Below the pieces are notes generated by a model that did not search any database, was not told the DNA's origin, and saw only the letters and a list, made by a program, of their open reading frames with translations. Positions 30,522 through 38,698 of a DNA stretch of 64,000 bases are shown in pieces; position 1 is the first letter of the stretch; every line of letters starts with the position of its first letter. The translations under genes and the position numbers were made by a program. The stretch comes from Pseudomonas aeruginosa PAO1 (lineage in GTDB: Bacteria > Pseudomonadota > Gammaproteobacteria > Pseudomonadales > Pseudomonadaceae), in assembly GCF_000006765.1 (NCBI RefSeq), contig NC_002516.2. The stretch is one strand, 5' to 3'.

Positions 30522-30761
30522 ATGACCCATTCTGTCGACGCCATTCTCGACGCCACCGGCCTGAACTGTCCCGAGCCGGTGATGATGCTGCACAACAAGG
30601 TCCGCGACCTGGCGCCCGGCGGCCTGCTCAAGGTGATCGCCACCGATCCCTCGACCCGCCGCGACATCCCCAAGTTCTGCGTGTTCCTCGGCCACGAGCT
30701 GGTCGAGCAGCAGGAAGAGGCGGGCACCTATCTCTACTGGATCCGCAAGAAGGCCGACTAG
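30522..30761 (+). CDS. tusA: Sulfurtransferase TusA/SirA
   Basis: [11 protein letters not shown] and [12 protein letters not shown]; 79 aa. Confidence 0.9.
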
Positions 30762-30792
30762 GCCTTCCGCGGACCCCGCCATCCCTCGCGCT

Positions 30793-32103
30793 TCAGCGCA
30801 GCTTCTCCATGAGCTGGTAGTACCACATCCCGGCGGCCAGCATCGGATTGCCGAAGAGGTCGCCCAGCGGCACCCTGAGGTGCTTGCAACGGGCGAAGGT
30901 GTCGAACTGCTCCAGGCTCCCGCTCATCGCCTTGGCCATGATCTCGCCCATGATGTGGCTGGTGGCTACGCCATGCCCCGAGTAGCCCTGGCAGTACCAG
31001 ACGTTGTCGGAGAGCTTGCCGAGCTGGGGGATCCGGTTCATTACGATGCCCATGGCGCAACTCCACTGGAACTCGATCTCCACGCCCTTCAGGCGCGGGA
31101 AGGTGCGCTCGATGCATGGCCGCAGCTCGGCGGTGATGTCCCGCGAGTCGCGGCCCGAGTAGTTGGCGCCGCCACCGAACAGCAGGCGGCCGTCGGCGGT
31201 GGGGCGGTAGTAATCGAGGACGAAGCGGCAATCGTAGACCGCCAGCCCCTGCGGGTTGATCTCCCGTGCCAGCTCGCCCAGCGGCCGGGTGGTAACGATT
31301 CCGCCCATGGCCGGGAAGATCATCCCCTTGAGCTGCCTGCGTTCGAGCTTGTGGTAGACATCGCCGGCAAGCAGGATCTGCTGCGCCTCGATCCTTCCCT
31401 CGCGGGTAATCACCGCCGGCCGCGGGCCGTGGACGATATCCAGCACCTCGGAATGTTCGAAGATCAGCGCGCCGAGGCCGGCCGCCGCCCTGGCCTCGCC
31501 GATGCACAGGTTGAGCGGGTGCAGGTGCATGTTGCGGGTGTTCTTCAGCGCGCCGCAGTACAGCTCGGTCTCCAGGTGGGCCTGGACGCCGGCCTTGTCC
31601 AGCAGGACCACCTGGTCGCCCATGCCGCGGCGCACCGCCTCCTCGTAGGAGGCCTGCAGCTCGCCCATGTGGCTGGCCTTCATCGCCGCGTGCAGGTGGC
31701 CATGGCGAAGGTCGCAGGCGATGCCGTACTTCTCCACCCGCTGGCGGATGATCTCGTGGCCGCGCCAGCGCAGGTGCCAGATGAAGTCCTCGACCTCGGC
31801 GCCCAGCCATTGGCGCATCTGCTTGTGCATCGCCGCGTCGCCGGACAGGCTGCCGGTGACCTGGCCGCCGTTGCGCCCGCTGGCGCCCCAGCCGATGCGA
31901 TGGGTCTCGACCAGGGCTACCTTGTAGCCACGCTCGGCCAGTTCGACCGCCGTGGCGACGCCGGTGAAGCCGCCGCCGATGATGGCGATGTCGACCGTCA
32001 CCGCGCCCAGCAGGGTCGGATAGTCGGTTTCCTCGTTGAGCGTGGCGGCGTAGTAGGACGGCGCGCGTTCCGCGGCCGGACGGGGATGGATTGCTGCGTT
32101 CAT
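30793..32103 (-). CDS. pauB2: Gamma-glutamylpolyamine oxidoreductase (PuuB-like)
   Basis: GGGFTG, GWGASGRNGGQ and QGYSGHGV; directly downstream of the glutamylpolyamine synthetase; 436 aa. Confidence 0.8.
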   Translation of the reverse strand: MNAAIHPRPAAERAPSYYAATLNEETDYPTLLGAVTVDIAIIGGGFTGVATAVELAERGYKVALVETHRIGWGASGRNGGQVTGSLSGDAAMHKQMRQWLGAEVEDFIWHLRWRGHEIIRQRVEKYGIACDLRHGHLHAAMKASHMGELQASYEEAVRRGMGDQVVLLDKAGVQAHLETELYCGALKNTRNMHLHPLNLCIGEARAAAGLGALIFEHSEVLDIVHGPRPAVITREGRIEAQQILLAGDVYHKLERRQLKGMIFPAMGGIVTTRPLGELAREINPQGLAVYDCRFVLDYYRPTADGRLLFGGGANYSGRDSRDITAELRPCIERTFPRLKGVEIEFQWSCAMGIVMNRIPQLGKLSDNVWYCQGYSGHGVATSHIMGEIMAKAMSGSLEQFDTFARCKHLRVPLGDLFGNPMLAAGMWYYQLMEKLR

Positions 32104-32171
32104 CGGGTATTCCTTGTTCCAGTGCGGCGCGTCCTGCCGGCGCGCCGCCGTATGCGGGCGGGTCCGGGATC

Positions 32172-33536
32172 TCAGGCCTGGGTCAGGTACCAGCGCCAGT
32201 CCTGCTCGCCGACCTCGCCCATGAATTGCCGGTATTCCGCGCGCTTCACCGCCAGGTAGACGCCGAGGAACGGCTCGCCGAAGGCTTCCCGCGCCCACTC
32301 GGAGCCTTGCAGGGTATCGAGGGCGGTCAGCCAGTCGGTGGGCAGGCGCTTGCCGGCCTGGGCGTAGCCGTTGCCCTCCACCGGCGCACCCGGATCGATG
32401 CCTTCGCGGATGCCGCGGTGGACCCCGGCGAGGAGCGCCGCGGCGGCCAGGTAGGGGTTGGCGTCGGCGCCGCAGATGCGGTGCTCGATATGCCGACTGG
32501 AGGCCGGGCCGCCCGGCACGCGCAGGCTCACGGTGCGGTTGTCGACGCCCCAGGTCTGCGCCAGCGGCGCGTAGCTGTTGGCCTGGAAGCGCCGGTAGGA
32601 GTTGGCGTTGGGACAGAACAGCAGGAGCGAGTCGAGCAGGCTGGCGAGCATGCCGCCGACCGCCTGGCGCAGCAACGGCGTGCCGGCGGGGTCGTCGCTG
32701 GCGAACAGGTTGTGGCCTTGTTCGTCGGCCAGGCTGACGTGCAGGTGCATGCCAGTGCCGGCCAGGTCGTCGAACGGCTTGGCCATGAAGCAGGCGAGCA
32801 TCCCGTGCTTGTGCGCGATGCCCTTGACCAGGCGCTTGTAGCGGATCGCCTGGTCCATGGCGGCGAGGGCGTCGCCGTGGTCGAGGGTGATTTCCACCTG
32901 GCCCGGGGCATATTCCGAGATCGCCGTGCGTGCCGGCAGGCCCTGCGCCTTGCAGGCGGCATAGAGGTCGGCGAGGAACGGCTCGATCTGCTCCAGTTCG
33001 CGCAGGCCGTAGACCTGGGTCGCCCGTGGGCGGCCGCCATCGGCGTCGCGGGCCGGTTGCGGGCGGCCGTTGGCGTCGCGCTCACGGTCGAGCAGGTAAA
33101 ACTCCAGCTCGGCGGCCATCACCGGGTGATAGCCCTCGCTCTTCAGCGCGTCGATGGTTCGCACCAGGAGGTGCCGCGGATCGGCGACGCTGGCGGGCAG
33201 GCCCTCGCTCGGGTGCATGCTGACCTGCACCGCCGCCGTCGGGATCTGTCGCCAGGGCAGGCGCACCAGGCTGCCGGACAGGGGGTAGGCGCGGCAGTCG
33301 ATGTCGCCGACGTCCCAGACCAGGCCGGAGTCCTCGACGTCCTCGCCGTTCATCGTCAGCCCGAGGATGGTGCTCGGCAGCGGCCGGCCGCTGCGGTAGA
33401 CGGCCAGCAGCTCGTCGCGGTGCAGCAGCTTGCCGCGCGGCACGCCGTTGGCGTCGAGAATGAACAGTTCGAAGAGTTCGATGTCGGGGTTGGCGGCCAG
33501 GAAATCCTGGGCTTCTTGTTCGCAGGCGAAGTTCAT
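32172..33536 (-). CDS. pauA3: Gamma-glutamylpolyamine synthetase (glutamine synthetase-like)
   Basis: DANGVPRGK, AELEFYL, SEYAPGQVEI, GTGMHLHVSL and EHRICGADANPY; 454 aa from MNFACEQ. Confidence 0.85.
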   Translation of the reverse strand: MNFACEQEAQDFLAANPDIELFELFILDANGVPRGKLLHRDELLAVYRSGRPLPSTILGLTMNGEDVEDSGLVWDVGDIDCRAYPLSGSLVRLPWRQIPTAAVQVSMHPSEGLPASVADPRHLLVRTIDALKSEGYHPVMAAELEFYLLDRERDANGRPQPARDADGGRPRATQVYGLRELEQIEPFLADLYAACKAQGLPARTAISEYAPGQVEITLDHGDALAAMDQAIRYKRLVKGIAHKHGMLACFMAKPFDDLAGTGMHLHVSLADEQGHNLFASDDPAGTPLLRQAVGGMLASLLDSLLLFCPNANSYRRFQANSYAPLAQTWGVDNRTVSLRVPGGPASSRHIEHRICGADANPYLAAAALLAGVHRGIREGIDPGAPVEGNGYAQAGKRLPTDWLTALDTLQGSEWAREAFGEPFLGVYLAVKRAEYRQFMGEVGEQDWRWYLTQA

Positions 33537-34003
33537 GGGGCTCTCTTGTCGGTCTTGTCCGGTAGCGTCGCGACGCTCGCAGCGGCGCTCCGGCGACGGC
33601 AGCGTCGCGGAACGGCATGCAAGCGGCAGGCCGGCCCCGCCGTTGCGCGGGGCCGGAGGGATATCAGGCGTGACGAGCGTCCGGCGGACGCGCGTGGCGG
33701 CAATGCCAGAGCGCCCAGAAGGCCAGTTCGAGAGGGAGGGAGAGCGGCTCCAGTTCCAGCCAGCGGCTGTGCTTGCGGGGTAGACGCGCGGGCGTTCCGG
33801 CCGGGTTGGCGGAAGGCTGGTAGGGCAGGGTGCGCGTCGTCGGTAGGTGCATGAAGGAAAACTGGGCCAGGGGTTGGAACAGCCTCGCACAGGCTGACGG
33901 GTGAATTAAATGCGCTTTTTACGACCTTTGCTTGAGCGAAATCGAAACCGAAGGAAAAAGAAGGGCGCCCCCGAATGGGCTGAAGAGACGCCCGGAAAGC
34001 GGC

Positions 34004-35401
34004 TCAACCCTTGTCGGCCTTGCCCGCGGCGGCGGCGAACCTGGCCAGGCGTACGTCGAGATGACGCGGGCGCCGGCCGGCGTCTTCGGCGTGCTCCTTG
34101 CGACGGATCGCGTTGCGCACCATCAGCGAACCGACATAGCGGATCGGCTCCGGCGGGAAGCGGCCGAGCGGCCCCTGGGTCAGCGGCGAACGGGTCCAGG
34201 GATTGTCCAGGCCGAGCGCCAGCGAAGAAAGGATCTGCCCGCCCATGTGGCATGGACCGACGCCGCTGCCGGAGTAGCCGAAGCCGTAGAACACATTGTC
34301 GCGGCCGTCGAGCCGGCCGAAGAACGGCAGGCCGGTCACCGAGCGATCCGACGGACCGTTCCAGCTGGCCTCGATGGCGACCTCGGCGAACTCGGGGAAG
34401 AACTCCCGCAAGCTGCCACGCAGTTGTCCGAGATACGGCGAGGGACGGTCGAACACCGGTAGCATGCGTCCGCCGTAGGCGAAGGTGTTGCCGCCCTTGC
34501 CGAGCATCAGCCGGCCGTCCGGGGTGTTGTGGTAGTAATGCACGAAGATCCGTGAGTCGAGCACGCTGACCCCGCTGGTCAGGCCGATCTCCTGCAACAG
34601 GTCCGGTCGTGGCTCGGTGATGAGCATGTCGCTGGAGACGATCGCCACGCTGCGTTCGAACTGCGGGAAGGCCCTCGCCATCCAGGCGTTCAGCGCCAGC
34701 ACCACGCGGCCGGCGACGACCCGCCCGTGGGGGGTGACCACTTCCGCCGGGCGGCCGTGCTCCAGTCCTCGCATCGGCGTGCCTTCGTACAGGCGTACCC
34801 CCAGTTGCAGGGCGACCCGGCGCAGGCCGCGAACCAGCTTGCCTGGTTGCACCGTCGCGGCAGCCGGCGAGAACCAGCCCTCCAGGTGCCTGCGCGAGCC
34901 GGCCAGGCGCTGCACGTCGGCCAGCGGGCGCTTGGCGAAGGAGTTGATGCCGTGGCGCTCCAGAGCGGCAATCACGCTGTCGGTGCTGCCGACCTGGGCC
35001 GGGTTGGTGGCGGTATAGAGGGTGCCGTCCAGCCGGTAGTCGGCCTCGACGTCGTAGCGCTGGCAGAAGGCGCCGATGGCCCGGATGCTGTCCTCGGAGG
35101 CCTTGACCAGGCGGATCGCCTCGGTTAGTCCGAACAGCCGTTCCAGGGTGAAGAACTTGGCCGACCAGGACAGCGCGCAGCCGCCGTTGCGGCCGCTGGC
35201 GCCGGCGCCGCAGAGATCGGCCTCGACCAGCACCACGTCGAGCCCGGGATCGTGCTCCTTGAGCATGATGGCGGTCCACAGGCCGGTGTAGCCGCCGCCG
35301 ACGATGCACACGTCGGCGCGGGTATCCCCGGCCAGCGGCGGGCAGGGTGCCGCATGTTCGGAGCGTAGGGCCTGGTCCAGCCAGAAGGGTCGGAAGGTCA
35401 T
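34004..35401 (-). CDS. FAD-dependent amine oxidoreductase, resembling the aminophosphonate oxidoreductase clade
   Basis: FWLDQAL, GGGYTG and GASGRNGGCALSWSAKFFTLERLFG; DAO family. Confidence 0.8.
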   Translation of the reverse strand: MTFRPFWLDQALRSEHAAPCPPLAGDTRADVCIVGGGYTGLWTAIMLKEHDPGLDVVLVEADLCGAGASGRNGGCALSWSAKFFTLERLFGLTEAIRLVKASEDSIRAIGAFCQRYDVEADYRLDGTLYTATNPAQVGSTDSVIAALERHGINSFAKRPLADVQRLAGSRRHLEGWFSPAAATVQPGKLVRGLRRVALQLGVRLYEGTPMRGLEHGRPAEVVTPHGRVVAGRVVLALNAWMARAFPQFERSVAIVSSDMLITEPRPDLLQEIGLTSGVSVLDSRIFVHYYHNTPDGRLMLGKGGNTFAYGGRMLPVFDRPSPYLGQLRGSLREFFPEFAEVAIEASWNGPSDRSVTGLPFFGRLDGRDNVFYGFGYSGSGVGPCHMGGQILSSLALGLDNPWTRSPLTQGPLGRFPPEPIRYVGSLMVRNAIRRKEHAEDAGRRPRHLDVRLARFAAAAGKADKG

Positions 35402-35411
35402 GGCTGTGCTC

Positions 35412-35765
35412 TCACTGCGGGCGGGCGGCGACGACGATCATTTCCACCCGCCAACGCGGGTCGATCAACTCGGCCAGGCTACAGGCGCGGGTCGGCGCCC
35501 GGCCTTCGGGAAACCACTGGTCCCAGACCTGGTTGAGACCGGCGTAGTCCTCCCGGTGGGCTAGCAGTATGCGTACCGAGAGCACCTGGCCGCGGTCGCT
35601 GCCGACGCTCTGGAGCAGCCGGTCGATGTTCTCCAGGATCTGGCGGGTCTGGTCCTGGATGTCACCGCTGGGGTCGTCTGCGACCTGGCCGCCGATGTAG
35701 ACCGTGTTGCCGTGCAGGGCCATCTCGGCCCGACGCTTGACGACTTCGAAACGTTCGATATGCAT
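35412..35765 (-). CDS. RidA/YjgF-family protein (YoaB-like)
   Basis: VYIGGQV, NQVWDQWF, PTRAC and WRVEMIVVA. Confidence 0.88.
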   Translation of the reverse strand: MHIERFEVVKRRAEMALHGNTVYIGGQVADDPSGDIQDQTRQILENIDRLLQSVGSDRGQVLSVRILLAHREDYAGLNQVWDQWFPEGRAPTRACSLAELIDPRWRVEMIVVAARPQ

Positions 35766-35820
35766 GAGGGGGTTCCCGGTTCGTGGAGAAGGACGCGGCG
35801 GAGGTTCCCGCCGCGGACGG

Positions 35821-37191
35821 TCAGGAGCGGATGGGACGGAAGTCCGCCAGGCTGGGGATATTCCGCAGGCTTTCCCGTGCGCCGCCGGGCCGGCTGTTCC
35901 AGTGCGGGAGGAGCACCGCGGTGGCGATCAGGGCTGCGATGGTGAAGCCGATGAACACCGTGTAGGTGTCGAAATAGCCGGGCAACAGACCGCCGAGGAT
36001 CGCGCCCACCGAACCGCAGCCATTGACGAAGCCGGAGGCGGTGCCGGCGGCCTCGCTGGTGCCGAAGTCGATGGCGGCGGAGCCGCAGATCATCGAGTCC
36101 GGGCCGTACAGGGTCAGTCCCATCATGAACAGCAGGCCGACCACTATCGGAATGCTGCCGGTGGTCATCGCCGGGACGAACAGCGCCAGGCAGACGGTCA
36201 GCGCCAGCAGGCTGATCACGCAGGCCGGCATGCGCCGTGCGCCGAACAGCTTGTCCGAGGCGAAGCCGATCAGGATCGGGCCGAGCAGGCCGGCTACCTC
36301 GAAGGCGGTGGGAACGATCGCCGCGCCGACCTTGCCGAGCGCCGGCATGCGTTCGTAGACGATCACCGGTCCCCACAGGAGGATCGCGTAGCGCGCCGGC
36401 TTGAGCAGGAAGTAGGCCAGGCCGAGGCAGAGCACCGTGCGGTTGCGCACCACCTTGGCGAGCACCTGCAGGCTGCCGCCGTTGCCGCCGTTGCCGCCTT
36501 CCGGCCTGAAGCCGGCATAGCGCACGGCTTCGCTCGCGGCCTGCGGTTCGACGGGAGGATGGCCGACGTCTTCCGGGCGGTTGCGCTGCAACAACAGGAA
36601 CAGCAGGGCCACGCCGCCGACCACCGCGGCGCTGAAGTAGAACGCCGCGTGCCAGGTACCGAACACGCTGTACGCCCACCAGCCGGCGAACGGCGAGGCG
36701 ACCAGGCCGCCGAAGGCGTAGCAGGTGCTCCACAGGCCGAGCACCCGACCGCGTTCGTGGGTGGCGAAGAAACTGCCGATGTTCTTGCACAGCCCCGACC
36801 AGCCGGTGGACTGCGCCAGTCCCTGGACCACCATGCAAGTGGCGAAGATCGGCAGGGTGGCGAAGGTGCCCATGACCAGCGCGGCCAGTGCGGAGATCAG
36901 CAGGCCGCCGAACACCACGATGCGCGGGCCGAAGCGGTCGGCCAGCACGCCCCAGGTGAACTGGCCGACGGCATAGGCGGCGAGGTAGATGGCGTCGAGA
37001 TCGGCCATCGCCATCTTGTCCAACTGGAAGCCCGGATCTTCGGCGATGCCGAGCTTGGCGACGGAAAAGGCCTTGCGGGTGAAATAGAAGGCGGCGTAGG
37101 CCAGCCAGGTGATCGCGAATATCTGCAGGCGCCAGCGCTGGAAGCTGGACACGGGAGAGGACGGCAGCGCCGTCCCGGGACGTTGATTCAT
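35821..37191 (-). CDS. MFS transporter, organophosphate:Pi antiporter (GlpT/UhpT-like) family
   Basis: YFTRKAFSVAK and ERGRVLGLWSTCYAFGG; 456 aa from MNQRPG; GAGG RBS. Confidence 0.8.
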   Translation of the reverse strand: MNQRPGTALPSSPVSSFQRWRLQIFAITWLAYAAFYFTRKAFSVAKLGIAEDPGFQLDKMAMADLDAIYLAAYAVGQFTWGVLADRFGPRIVVFGGLLISALAALVMGTFATLPIFATCMVVQGLAQSTGWSGLCKNIGSFFATHERGRVLGLWSTCYAFGGLVASPFAGWWAYSVFGTWHAAFYFSAAVVGGVALLFLLLQRNRPEDVGHPPVEPQAASEAVRYAGFRPEGGNGGNGGSLQVLAKVVRNRTVLCLGLAYFLLKPARYAILLWGPVIVYERMPALGKVGAAIVPTAFEVAGLLGPILIGFASDKLFGARRMPACVISLLALTVCLALFVPAMTTGSIPIVVGLLFMMGLTLYGPDSMICGSAAIDFGTSEAAGTASGFVNGCGSVGAILGGLLPGYFDTYTVFIGFTIAALIATAVLLPHWNSRPGGARESLRNIPSLADFRPIRS

Positions 37192-37244
37192 GGTTCTGAC
37201 CTCGATCTTGTTATCGGTGCCGGCAGGTGTGAGGGGAACACGCC

Positions 37245-37257
37245 TTGTTGTTGTTCT
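37245..37257 (-). promoter_or_regulatory. Hfq/Crc CA motif in the MFS leader
   Basis: AGAACAACAACAA on the mRNA strand. Confidence 0.5.
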
Positions 37258-37411
37258 GATGAGCACTTCCGCACCGCCATGTCGCGGTGCCTGGTCAGAG
37301 GGATCTGGAGTCGGCTTCACCTCCTGGGTAAGGGTTGCGGATGCCCAGGCAGGGGCTGGCTGCCGAGGCGCTGGCGCGCTGTGGTGAAGCGATGGAAACA
37401 ATTCCGGATAA

Positions 37412-37430
37412 ATAAATGAAATCGATTTAT
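37412..37430. promoter_or_regulatory. Candidate LysR recognition site
   Basis: ATAAAT-N7-ATTTAT in an AT-rich patch between the divergent MFS and LysR genes. Confidence 0.5.
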
Positions 37431-37568
37431 CAAATTTTAAATATAAGTTTTACTTGTTTGTCCGTAAGCCTGGCGCGGCGTGGGTCGAGGAAGTTGACCG
37501 AACGGTCATCCCCGTGTGCGCCGCCCATGGCGCGGAACCCCTTGTCCTGCCTGGAGTGGTGAAGATCC

Positions 37569-38450
37569 ATGTCGGTATCCCATGCGCAGTTGAAGGCTTT
37601 CCATGCAGTCGCCGTGTACGGCAGCTTCACGCGCGCCGCCGAGCGCCTGTTTCTCACCCAGCCGGCGGTTTCCGACCAGGTGCGCAAGCTGGAGGAGCGT
37701 TACGGCGTGCTGCTGTTCCACCGTAACAAGCGCTCGGTGCGCCTGAGCGAACTGGGCGAGCGCCTGCTCGCGGTGACCCAGCGGCTGTTCGCGATCGAGG
37801 CCGAGGCGGAGGAGCTGTTGTCCGCCTCCAGCGCCCTGCAGACCGGCACCCTGACCCTGGCGGTGGATGCGCCGGTGCATGTATTGCCGCAGATCGCGCG
37901 TTTCTGCGAGCGCTATCCGGGCATCGCGGTGCGGGTGGAGACCGGCAATACCGACGAGTCTCTGCAGCGACTGTTCAGCTACCAGGCCGACCTGGCCCTG
38001 TTGGGCCGGGACGTCAGCGACGAGCGGTTGCTTTCGCTGACCCTGCGCAACGACCCGATCGTCGCTTTCGTTTCGCTCAGCCATCCGTGGGCCGGGCGCG
38101 AGTCGATCCGGCTCGCCGATCTCGACGACATGCCGCTGGTGCTGCGCGAGCAGGGCTCGGTGACCCGCCAGACCCTGGAGGAGGAGATGAGCCGCGCCGG
38201 CCTGCGGATCTGTCCGGCGATCCAGGTCGAGGGCCGCGAGGCCTCGCGCGAGGCGGTGGTGGCGGGGATCGGCGTGGGGGTGGTGTCGGCCGCGGAGTTC
38301 GGCGCCGACACGCGGGTCCATGCGCTACCCATCGTCGATTGCCAGCGACGCCTGACCGAGACCCTGGTGTGCCTGCGCGAACAGCGTTCGCGGCGGATCG
38401 TCGAGACCTTCCTCGACCTGGTCGGCGAGGACCTGCCGGCGCCGAGCTAG
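37569..38450 (+). CDS. LysR-family regulator (phosphonate-catabolism-associated type)
   Basis: QLKAFHAVAVYGSFTRAAERLFLTQPAVSDQVRKLEERYG. Confidence 0.9.
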   Translation: MSVSHAQLKAFHAVAVYGSFTRAAERLFLTQPAVSDQVRKLEERYGVLLFHRNKRSVRLSELGERLLAVTQRLFAIEAEAEELLSASSALQTGTLTLAVDAPVHVLPQIARFCERYPGIAVRVETGNTDESLQRLFSYQADLALLGRDVSDERLLSLTLRNDPIVAFVSLSHPWAGRESIRLADLDDMPLVLREQGSVTRQTLEEEMSRAGLRICPAIQVEGREASREAVVAGIGVGVVSAAEFGADTRVHALPIVDCQRRLTETLVCLREQRSRRIVETFLDLVGEDLPAPS

Positions 38451-38470
38451 GGCGCGGCTTCGCGCAAGCG

Positions 38471-38497
38471 AAAAAAAGCCCGGCGGATGCCGGGCTT
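38471..38497. terminator. Terminator between convergent LysR and the 59-aa gene
   Basis: AAGCCCGGC-GGAT-GCCGGGCTT with an A7 run on the left (U tract for the minus strand). Confidence 0.8.
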
Positions 38498-38518
38498 CGA
38501 AGTCGTGCTGGCGGGCGC

Positions 38519-38698
38519 TCAGGCCTGCTTCTGTTCCTGCTCCAGGGACCTGTCCAGTTCGCGGCAGGCGCGCTGGATCATCACCTCGGTGATCGGGATC
38601 TCCCGGCCCTGGGCGTCGATGATGGCGCCACCGGTGTGCTGCTGCGTATTGAAGGGGATCACGCGGCGCTTGGCGGTATCGGTGTGTTGCGAATTCAT
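38519..38698 (-). CDS. Small hypothetical protein (59 aa)
   Basis: MNSQHTDTAKRRVIPF...GGAIIDAQGREIPITEVMIQRAC; GAGGAG RBS; own terminator. Confidence 0.8.
   Translation of the reverse strand: MNSQHTDTAKRRVIPFNTQQHTGGAIIDAQGREIPITEVMIQRACRELDRSLEQEQKQA

Follow-up and report, generated by a model that had tools for sequence, protein, structure and literature searches.

The analysis of a 64,000-nucleotide stretch of the Pseudomonas aeruginosa PAO1 genome (contig NC_002516.2; this whole stretch is hereafter called the window) has revealed, between positions 34,004 and 38,450, a locus that is probably orthologous to the AepR(P)-AepP-PbfB module, and the mechanism by which it would act in this bacterium is inferred here. 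Its four genes code for a LysR-type regulator, a transporter of the major facilitator superfamily (MFS), a protein of the Rid family and a flavin adenine dinucleotide (FAD)-dependent oxidoreductase, referred to below as the oxidase. A previous interpretation of the same DNA, made from the letters only and called here the sequence-only reading, had proposed aminophosphonate import and oxidation under the control of a phosphonate-type LysR protein, with the phosphonatase encoded elsewhere. It had staked this core on two profile models, TIGR03329 for the oxidase and TIGR03339 for the regulator, and the core stands because both scores exceed the cut-offs. Further support came from a scan of one genome per species, in which neighbouring genes were identified by tblastn synteny in the examined flanks of 80 Pseudomonas loci: phnW and/or phnX were present within 10 kb of the oxidase gene in 66 of them.

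The four genes were confirmed as open reading frames at the coordinates given in Table 1, and the ATG start of the MFS gene agrees with public gene calls. The intergenic gaps, 55 nt between the MFS and Rid genes and 10 nt between the Rid and oxidase genes, are consistent with the three-gene operon, divergent from the LysR gene, that had been described. The genes are probably PA1570 to PA1567, a numbering based on the gene order and on the name pauA3 given to the adjacent PA1566 in PMC7214821. A 585-residue open reading frame containing both PF01042 and PF01266 (P0002), 100% identical to P. aeruginosa proteins, was found only on short contigs, none longer than 3.9 kb; its probable origin is a frameshift or an assembly error over the 10-nt gap, not a natural fusion.

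In the hidden Markov model (HMM) searches that the sequence-only reading had recommended, the oxidase scored 831.8 bits with TIGR03329 (cut-off 632.8 bits) and covered profile positions 1-460 of 460; its score with PF01266 was 205 bits. The assembly collection contains this sequence in more than 10,000 of its blocks. PbfB, PbfC and PbfD are three groups of FAD enzymes of 2-aminoethylphosphonate (2AEP or AEP) clusters that convert N-methyl-AEP into phosphonoacetaldehyde (Zangelmi et al. 2023). The oxidase had been labeled PbfC-like, which is wrong, since it is of the PbfB type. It is 80% identical both to the P. putida orthologue and to the P. taetrolens orthologue (P0085), the latter encoded in a cluster with the order phnX-phnW, two LysR genes, then MFS-oxidase, in which PhnW and PhnX were confirmed by HMM. 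The published list of PbfB proteins includes Pseudomonas enzymes of phnWX clusters, one of them from P. taetrolens (Table S1, Zangelmi et al. 2023); its accession, WP_048379425, is not among the four accessions shown for P0085, and the two records are taken to be the same enzyme. Because an identity of 80% to a PbfB-cluster enzyme clashes with the median inter-group p-distance of 0.81 reported for these FAD enzyme groups (Zangelmi et al. 2023), the published distance sets the protein apart from PbfC, and its sequence assigns it to the PbfB clade.

The MFS protein had been described as a GlpT/UhpT-type transporter. The organophosphate:Pi antiporter models were indeed those with the best scores, but every curated cut-off was missed (TIGR00881, 211 bits versus 407.75; GlpT model, 152 bits versus 632.55; UhpT, 98.5 bits versus 497), and the protein, whose scores stay far under the equivalog cut-offs of GlpT, UhpT and PgtP, is a curated member of none of these families. 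Its best relative of solved structure is GlpT (PDB 1PW4, E 1e-32), and it keeps both arginines aligned to the phosphate-binding arginines of GlpT, which we take to be R45 and R269 in GlpT numbering. In the central loop (about 36475..36498, minus strand) a 9-bp tandem duplication gives GGNGGNGG, where other P. aeruginosa assemblies have GGNGG, and the protein is 456 residues long in the strain with the duplication and 453 residues long in those assemblies.

The closest system that has been studied is that of P. putida BIRD-1, in which PPUBIRD1_3129 codes for the GlpT-like permease AepP, with the LysR gene AepR(P) alongside, and in which aepP mutants do not grow on 2AEP as nitrogen or carbon source (PMC8316502, PMC9311074). 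In the BIRD-1 proteome table PPUBIRD1_3128 is a FAD-dependent oxidoreductase and PPUBIRD1_3130 a LysR regulator (PMC8316502). With 2AEP as nitrogen source, AepP rose from 25.6 to 28.9 log2 units of label-free quantification intensity and the 3128 protein from about 24-26 to 31.2-31.5, an induction of about 60-100-fold (PMC8316502, Supplementary Dataset 1). The induction of 3128 is unremarked in PMC8316502, and the word oxidoreductase is absent from its main text. The gene order 3128, 3129, 3130 matches that of the module described here; the identity figures given below come from a P. putida locus, and BIRD-1 was compared by gene order. The P. aeruginosa MFS protein is 72% identical over 446 residues to a P. 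putida MFS protein flanked by the same LysR and oxidase. By this comparison it is an orthologue of the 2AEP permease AepP, and transport of 2AEP is predicted in P. aeruginosa; homologues of aepP and phnWX have also been reported in P. aeruginosa PA14 (Murphy et al.). The import of an N-substituted or variant aminoalkylphosphonate, as first proposed, is thus retained as aminophosphonate import, but the module is not limited to such variants, because AepP of P. putida imports plain 2AEP.

The regulator scored 400 bits with TIGR03339 (cut-off 341.1 bits). It is 82% identical to the P. putida LysR protein encoded divergently from aepP and just 41% identical to the phnWX-linked LysR paralogue, and it is a predicted orthologue of AepR(P). 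Between the LysR gene and the operon lies the palindrome AAATCGATTT. In 80 of the 81 loci that carry this LysR gene, and across all gene orders, it is at most 400 bp away from the LysR start, which makes it an obvious candidate operator for AepR(P). A second copy is located ahead of phnW-MFS-phnX in L008, L010 and L011 (near 11556, 11575 and 7049, respectively) and ahead of Rid-oxidase in L085 (near 9526); these copies suggest two operators for the same LysR protein in the four loci.

A search for homologues of PhnW and PhnX in the window (tblastn with the P. taetrolens proteins, E≤1e-10) gave none, as the sequence-only reading had stated. This stand-alone position of the P. aeruginosa module is a lineage-specific arrangement, since most Pseudomonas species have phnW/phnX nearby; three other loci, among them that of P. 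putida, carry the module without a phn gene in the examined flanks. A LysR regulator was present in the flanks in 75 of the 80 species loci and an MFS transporter in 70, so that a GlpT-like transporter beside this amine oxidase, previously thought unusual, is rather the usual Pseudomonas arrangement. An 81%-identical oxidase without any of the usual module neighbors was found in L045, L064 and L078; in L045, the one inspected among the three, genes for a PotF-like binding protein and a class-III aminotransferase adjoin it (L045:7218-9773). The consistent linkage to phnW/phnX, which are specific to the C-P pathway, bears on whether the transporter and the oxidase could act on phosphate esters, such as phosphoethanolamine, and not on C-P compounds. 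The transporter family carries mainly phosphate esters, and no AepP specificity beyond 2AEP was found in the literature consulted. Against this, the growth and proteome data of P. putida were obtained with 2AEP, and N-methyl-AEP was oxidized by extracts of cells expressing PbfB of Vibrio vulnificus (Zangelmi et al. 2023), which together with the phn linkage makes an activity on phosphate esters highly improbable.

Downstream from the oxidase gene, on the same strand and after a gap of 467 bp, there are a PauA3-type and a PauB2-type gene that the sequence-only reading had missed. The PauA3-type protein scored 228 bits with NF045547, below the cut-off. We assume for both genes a gamma-glutamylpolyamine role, with which their names agree; the names appear in PMC7214821. 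A sigma-54-like element of the form GG-N10-GC is located at 33619..33632 (minus strand), some 85 nt ahead of the pauA3 start codon, and a AACAAGAA motif at 33513..33520 (minus strand), just inside the first pauA3 codons. The expression of PA1566 (pauA3) was 42-fold lower in ntrB/ntrC mutants (PMC7214821), a dependence that the GG-N10-GC element fits, whereas the aepP homologue(s) of PA14 were reported not to respond to NtrBC (Murphy et al.). When inspected by eye, neither the aepP leader nor the conserved block that follows the palindrome showed a conserved GG-N10-GC element. Considering the 467-bp gap, the terminator-like hairpin within it (Table 1), the GG-N10-GC element and the differing NtrBC response, pauA3-pauB2 appears to be a separate, NtrBC-dependent unit.

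These neighbors raise another interpretation, in which the operon would serve polyamine or general amine catabolism together with pauA3-pauB2, the oxidase would act on non-phosphorylated amines and the phosphonate labels would be a carry-over of annotation. The order of the genes on one strand, the 30% identity between the oxidase and PauB2, the name gamma-glutamylputrescine oxidoreductase that some sources give to homologues, and the three loci with an oxidase devoid of its usual neighbors (including L045, with its PotF-like protein and aminotransferase) are in its favor. However, pauA3-pauB2 adjoins the oxidase gene in only 1 of the 80 species loci (P. paraeruginosa), in comparison with the 66 that have phnW/phnX; the two units have separate regulatory elements and differ in their NtrBC dependence; the transporter is of the organophosphate:Pi antiporter type and has the phosphate-binding arginines; and the P. 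putida orthologues respond to 2AEP. The polyamine interpretation is therefore largely rejected and considered very unlikely.

The third protein of the operon, previously called RidA, belongs to the Rid family (PF01042, 81.5 bits versus a cut-off of 27.3) but not to RidA proper, as it reached only 51.9 bits with TIGR00004 (cut-off 106.25), and it is Rid2-like instead. Residues 2-115 are identical to those of PDB 3K12 (uncharacterised protein A6V7T0). The closest characterized relatives are the Rid2 proteins PSPTO_0102 (E 8e-28) and PA5083 (E 6e-19), both of which hydrolyze, in vitro, the imines that DauA and other FAD-dependent oxidoreductases release (Hodge-Hanson and Downs 2017); Rid2 proteins in general act in vitro on imines from FAD amine or amino-acid oxidoreductases (PMC5619798, PMC4433059), and it was already known that Rid genes in general cluster with genes for FAD amine oxidases. 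Residue R93 aligns with the sole arginine in the corresponding segment of PSPTO_0102, is invariant in 18 orthologues, and is the equivalent of RidA Arg105, the arginine of the imine-hydrolyzing subfamilies (RidA, Rid1-3). R12, R65, W105, R106 and C95 are also invariant in these 18 orthologues, and they differ from PSPTO_0102 in the alignment.

Rid orthologues, 65-79% identical, were encoded in the flanks of the oxidase gene in 15 of the 80 species, and in all 15 Rid-bearing loci the gene was directly upstream of that of the oxidase. At least four gene orders were found for these loci, including LysR, MFS-Rid-oxidase, as in P. aeruginosa; LysR, Rid-oxidase-phnW-MFS-phnX; LysR, Rid-oxidase alone; and the order of P. 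guineae. In L015, L019, L047 and L060 the LysR-linked unit consists of just the two genes, Rid-oxidase, and neither a transporter gene nor phnW is nearby; in Collimonas a Rid gene comes after that of a TIGR03329 oxidase (801 bits), in the vicinity of a gene for a PhnD-type binding protein. The most likely role of the Rid2-like protein would be a faster hydrolysis of the imine product of the oxidase, although a phnW-only context leaves an alternative. In this context (L087:4293-5851, GCA_964633095.1) a 63%-identical Rid gene is located directly after phnW (499 bits), in a GntR-linked operon with a PhnU2-type ATP-binding cassette transporter, and the oxidase product may consequently not be the sole or the true substrate of the protein.

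The alternative is that the module does serve aminophosphonates but the Rid protein does not serve the oxidase: it would pre-empt damage by a PhnW enamine/imine or a phosphonoacetaldehyde adduct, or it would be non-catalytic. Proteins of the RidA family classically guard against enamines from pyridoxal-phosphate enzymes, and both the phnW-linked gene of L087 and the many species with the oxidase and no Rid gene in the examined flanks speak for it. The position directly upstream of the oxidase gene in 15 of 15 loci, whatever the gene order, the four Rid-oxidase units devoid of transporter and phnW, and the pair maintained in Collimonas all argue against it, and we regard this alternative as unlikely.

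Upstream of aepP the transcript is predicted to form a structured leader with three helices. P1, formed by UCUGACC and GGUCAGA, overlaps the two final G residues of the Shine-Dalgarno sequence GAGG; P2 is a hairpin of widely variable sequence between lineages but always paired, all 50 distinct versions being able to fold; and in P3, GUGCU pairs with GGCAC and encloses an A-rich motif. The minimum free energy of the folded leader segment was -38.6 kcal/mol (z -2.5). In the alignment of leaders from 20 species, 91.2% of the cells were paired, compared with 30-42% when the partners were slid, and compensatory changes occurred at 4 of the 6 pairs of P2, a level that none of 500 shuffles attained; P1 and P3 hardly vary and thus contributed no covariation. 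When RNAalifold was applied to the MAFFT alignment, P1 and P3 were recovered and P2 was not, and the P2 sub-alignment alone gave no structure, as its hairpins are out of register; each distinct P2 segment was therefore folded separately and the pairs were counted on named columns. The full leader motif string occurred once in each of 63 public loci scored, all with aepP first after the LysR gene, and it was absent from every Rid-first or other locus scored; some aepP-first loci (e.g. L026, L035, L076) match the core string only and not the strict pattern. The structured leader with its A-rich motif was present in all aepP-first loci checked. A search of positions 33400..38600 against Rfam (E≤1) gave just two chance matches, inside the oxidase gene, and the leader accordingly fits no known RNA family of that database; a structured aepP leader seems to be undescribed.

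The A-rich motif AACAACAACAA is the catabolite activity (CA) motif noticed in the sequence-only reading, and it is indeed present in the leader. An A-rich run is maintained at the same place in the leaders of Pseudomonas, and the predicted fold places it near the Shine-Dalgarno sequence. The motif is rare in the window; AANAANAA was counted 13 times in the 64 kb, against 3.9 expected. Our best guess is that the leader may be a platform that places an Hfq/Crc site beside the ribosome-binding site.

According to the mechanism proposed, the LysR protein would bind the AAATCGATTT palindrome and activate the divergent operon when 2AEP or one of its breakdown products is present, and AepP, a GlpT-like antiporter, would import 2AEP and closely related compounds, phosphate being the probable counter-substrate. 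Plain 2AEP would be directed to PhnW and PhnX, encoded outside the window, while PbfB would oxidize N-methyl-2AEP, and possibly further analogues that are not accepted by PhnW. The imine or iminium formed in this way would be hydrolyzed to phosphonoacetaldehyde, a step that the Rid2-like protein would speed up. Phosphonoacetaldehyde would finally be split by PhnX into acetaldehyde and phosphate. The hand-off to PhnWX encoded elsewhere, as proposed earlier, is maintained for PhnX but not for PhnW, which the oxidase product would bypass. In addition, the folded leader with its A-rich motif of Hfq/Crc type would pair with the ribosome-binding region and probably add translational (catabolite) control. 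Beyond this scheme, we put forward as a tentative proposal that the Rid2-like protein could represent a Rid clade of phosphonate clusters acting on the phosphonoacetaldehyde imine or iminium and, separately, that the aepP leader could be an uncatalogued cis-regulatory RNA coupling Hfq/Crc, or another signal, to occlusion of the ribosome-binding site.

Several observations weigh against this interpretation. The literature search for PA1567 to PA1570 found no experiment on the P. aeruginosa genes, and the activity of PbfB is known solely from crude extracts, for one Vibrio enzyme that does not use plain AEP. The known substrates of Rid proteins are 2-imino acids, whose carboxylate is bound by the conserved arginine, and a phosphonate aldimine or N-methyl iminium would be a new type of substrate for the family. 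In L087 no oxidase was found in the 12.9-kb stretch around phnW-Rid, and 65 of the 80 species have no Rid gene in the examined flanks, which means that the gene can be dispensed with. The distance from the A-rich motif to the aepP ATG downstream of it is 54-64 nt, so that the motif does not cover the start codon, and the PA14 aepP homologue(s), as mentioned above, were not NtrBC-responsive.

Coordinates of all features are listed in Table 1. Other genes in the surroundings code for an aconitase, RlmM, TusA, a NAD-kinase-like protein and a citrate synthase, in addition to the PauB-type and PauA-type genes. A sigma-70 consensus scan of positions 30600..38600 found no promoter.

Table 1. Features of the P. 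aeruginosa PAO1 aminophosphonate locus and its neighbors (positions in the window).
Feature	Position	Strand	Remarks
PauB2-type FAD oxidoreductase	30793..32103	-	Neighbor; paralogue of the oxidase
PauA3-type glutamine-synthetase-like gene	32172..33536	-	Neighbor, probably separate transcription unit
Weak terminator-like hairpin	33960..33972	-	About 30 nt past the oxidase stop; 5-bp stem then T-run; consensus match only
FAD-dependent aminophosphonate oxidoreductase, predicted PbfB type	34004..35401	-	465 residues; TIGR03329, PF01266
Rid-family gene, Rid2-like	35412..35765	-	117 residues; PF01042
MFS transporter, organophosphate:Pi antiporter type, predicted AepP orthologue	35821..37191	-	456 residues
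Predicted structured 5' leader of aepP	37195..37299	-	Helices P1, P2 and P3; folding and comparison
A-rich AAnAAnAA motif (CA-type, Hfq/Crc-like)	37245..37255	-	Inside the aepP leader
Perfect 10-bp palindrome AAATCGATTT	37419..37428		Within a conserved AT-rich block; candidate AepR(P) operator
LysR-type regulator, predicted AepR(P) orthologue	37569..38450	+	293 residues; TIGR03339; divergent from the other three genes

The assignment gives a literature-backed role to four uncharacterized core genes of a major opportunistic pathogen, for which 2AEP and N-methyl-AEP would be nutrients independent of the phosphate supply. With regard to novelty, no demonstration in P. aeruginosa was found, in agreement with the sequence-only reading, but the same module has already been studied in P. 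putida; the P. aeruginosa module is thus a member of a characterized kind, of which the Rid-bearing variant and the leader RNA appear to be undescribed. No mention of Rid was found in the phosphonate-catabolism literature consulted, nor of this accessory Rid2-like gene or the conserved leader RNA. Should a phosphonate imine prove to be the substrate of the Rid2-like protein, the range of reactions known for the Rid family would be widened. The protein would then be the first of its family whose imine substrate carries no carboxylate, and 2AEP catabolism would have a new, recurrent accessory enzyme. A regulatory leader, in turn, would help to account for the several layers of control, by carbon, nitrogen and substrate, that have been reported for P. 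putida aepP.

When compared with known systems, the locus resembles AepR(P)-AepP of P. putida BIRD-1 (Murphy et al. 2021, 2022) in its divergent TIGR03339-type LysR gene, in the GlpT-like MFS gene in first position and in the FAD oxidoreductase. The P. putida genes occur in the same order, with identities of 82% for LysR, 72% for MFS and 80% for the oxidase, and share the palindrome and the leader; by contrast with BIRD-1, P. aeruginosa has a Rid gene between those of the MFS protein and the oxidase, a longer spacer between the LysR gene and the operator, and pauA3-pauB2 downstream. The transporter shares with GlpT (PDB 1PW4) the arginines aligned to R45 and R269, but the positions aligned to K80 and H165 are Q and Y, and its score is far under the cut-offs. 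Like PbfB (Zangelmi et al. 2023), the oxidase is a full-length TIGR03329 protein closely related to the P. taetrolens phnWX-cluster enzyme; unlike PbfB, its gene is not clustered with phnW/phnX and is paired with a Rid gene. Finally, the Rid protein has the Rid2 proteins PSPTO_0102 and PA5083 as its nearest characterized relatives and is like them in the catalytic arginine (R93) and in the neighboring FAD amine oxidoreductase, and it differs from PSPTO_0102 in its own set of invariant residues and from both in its predicted substrate, a phosphonate aldimine or iminium in place of a 2-imino acid.

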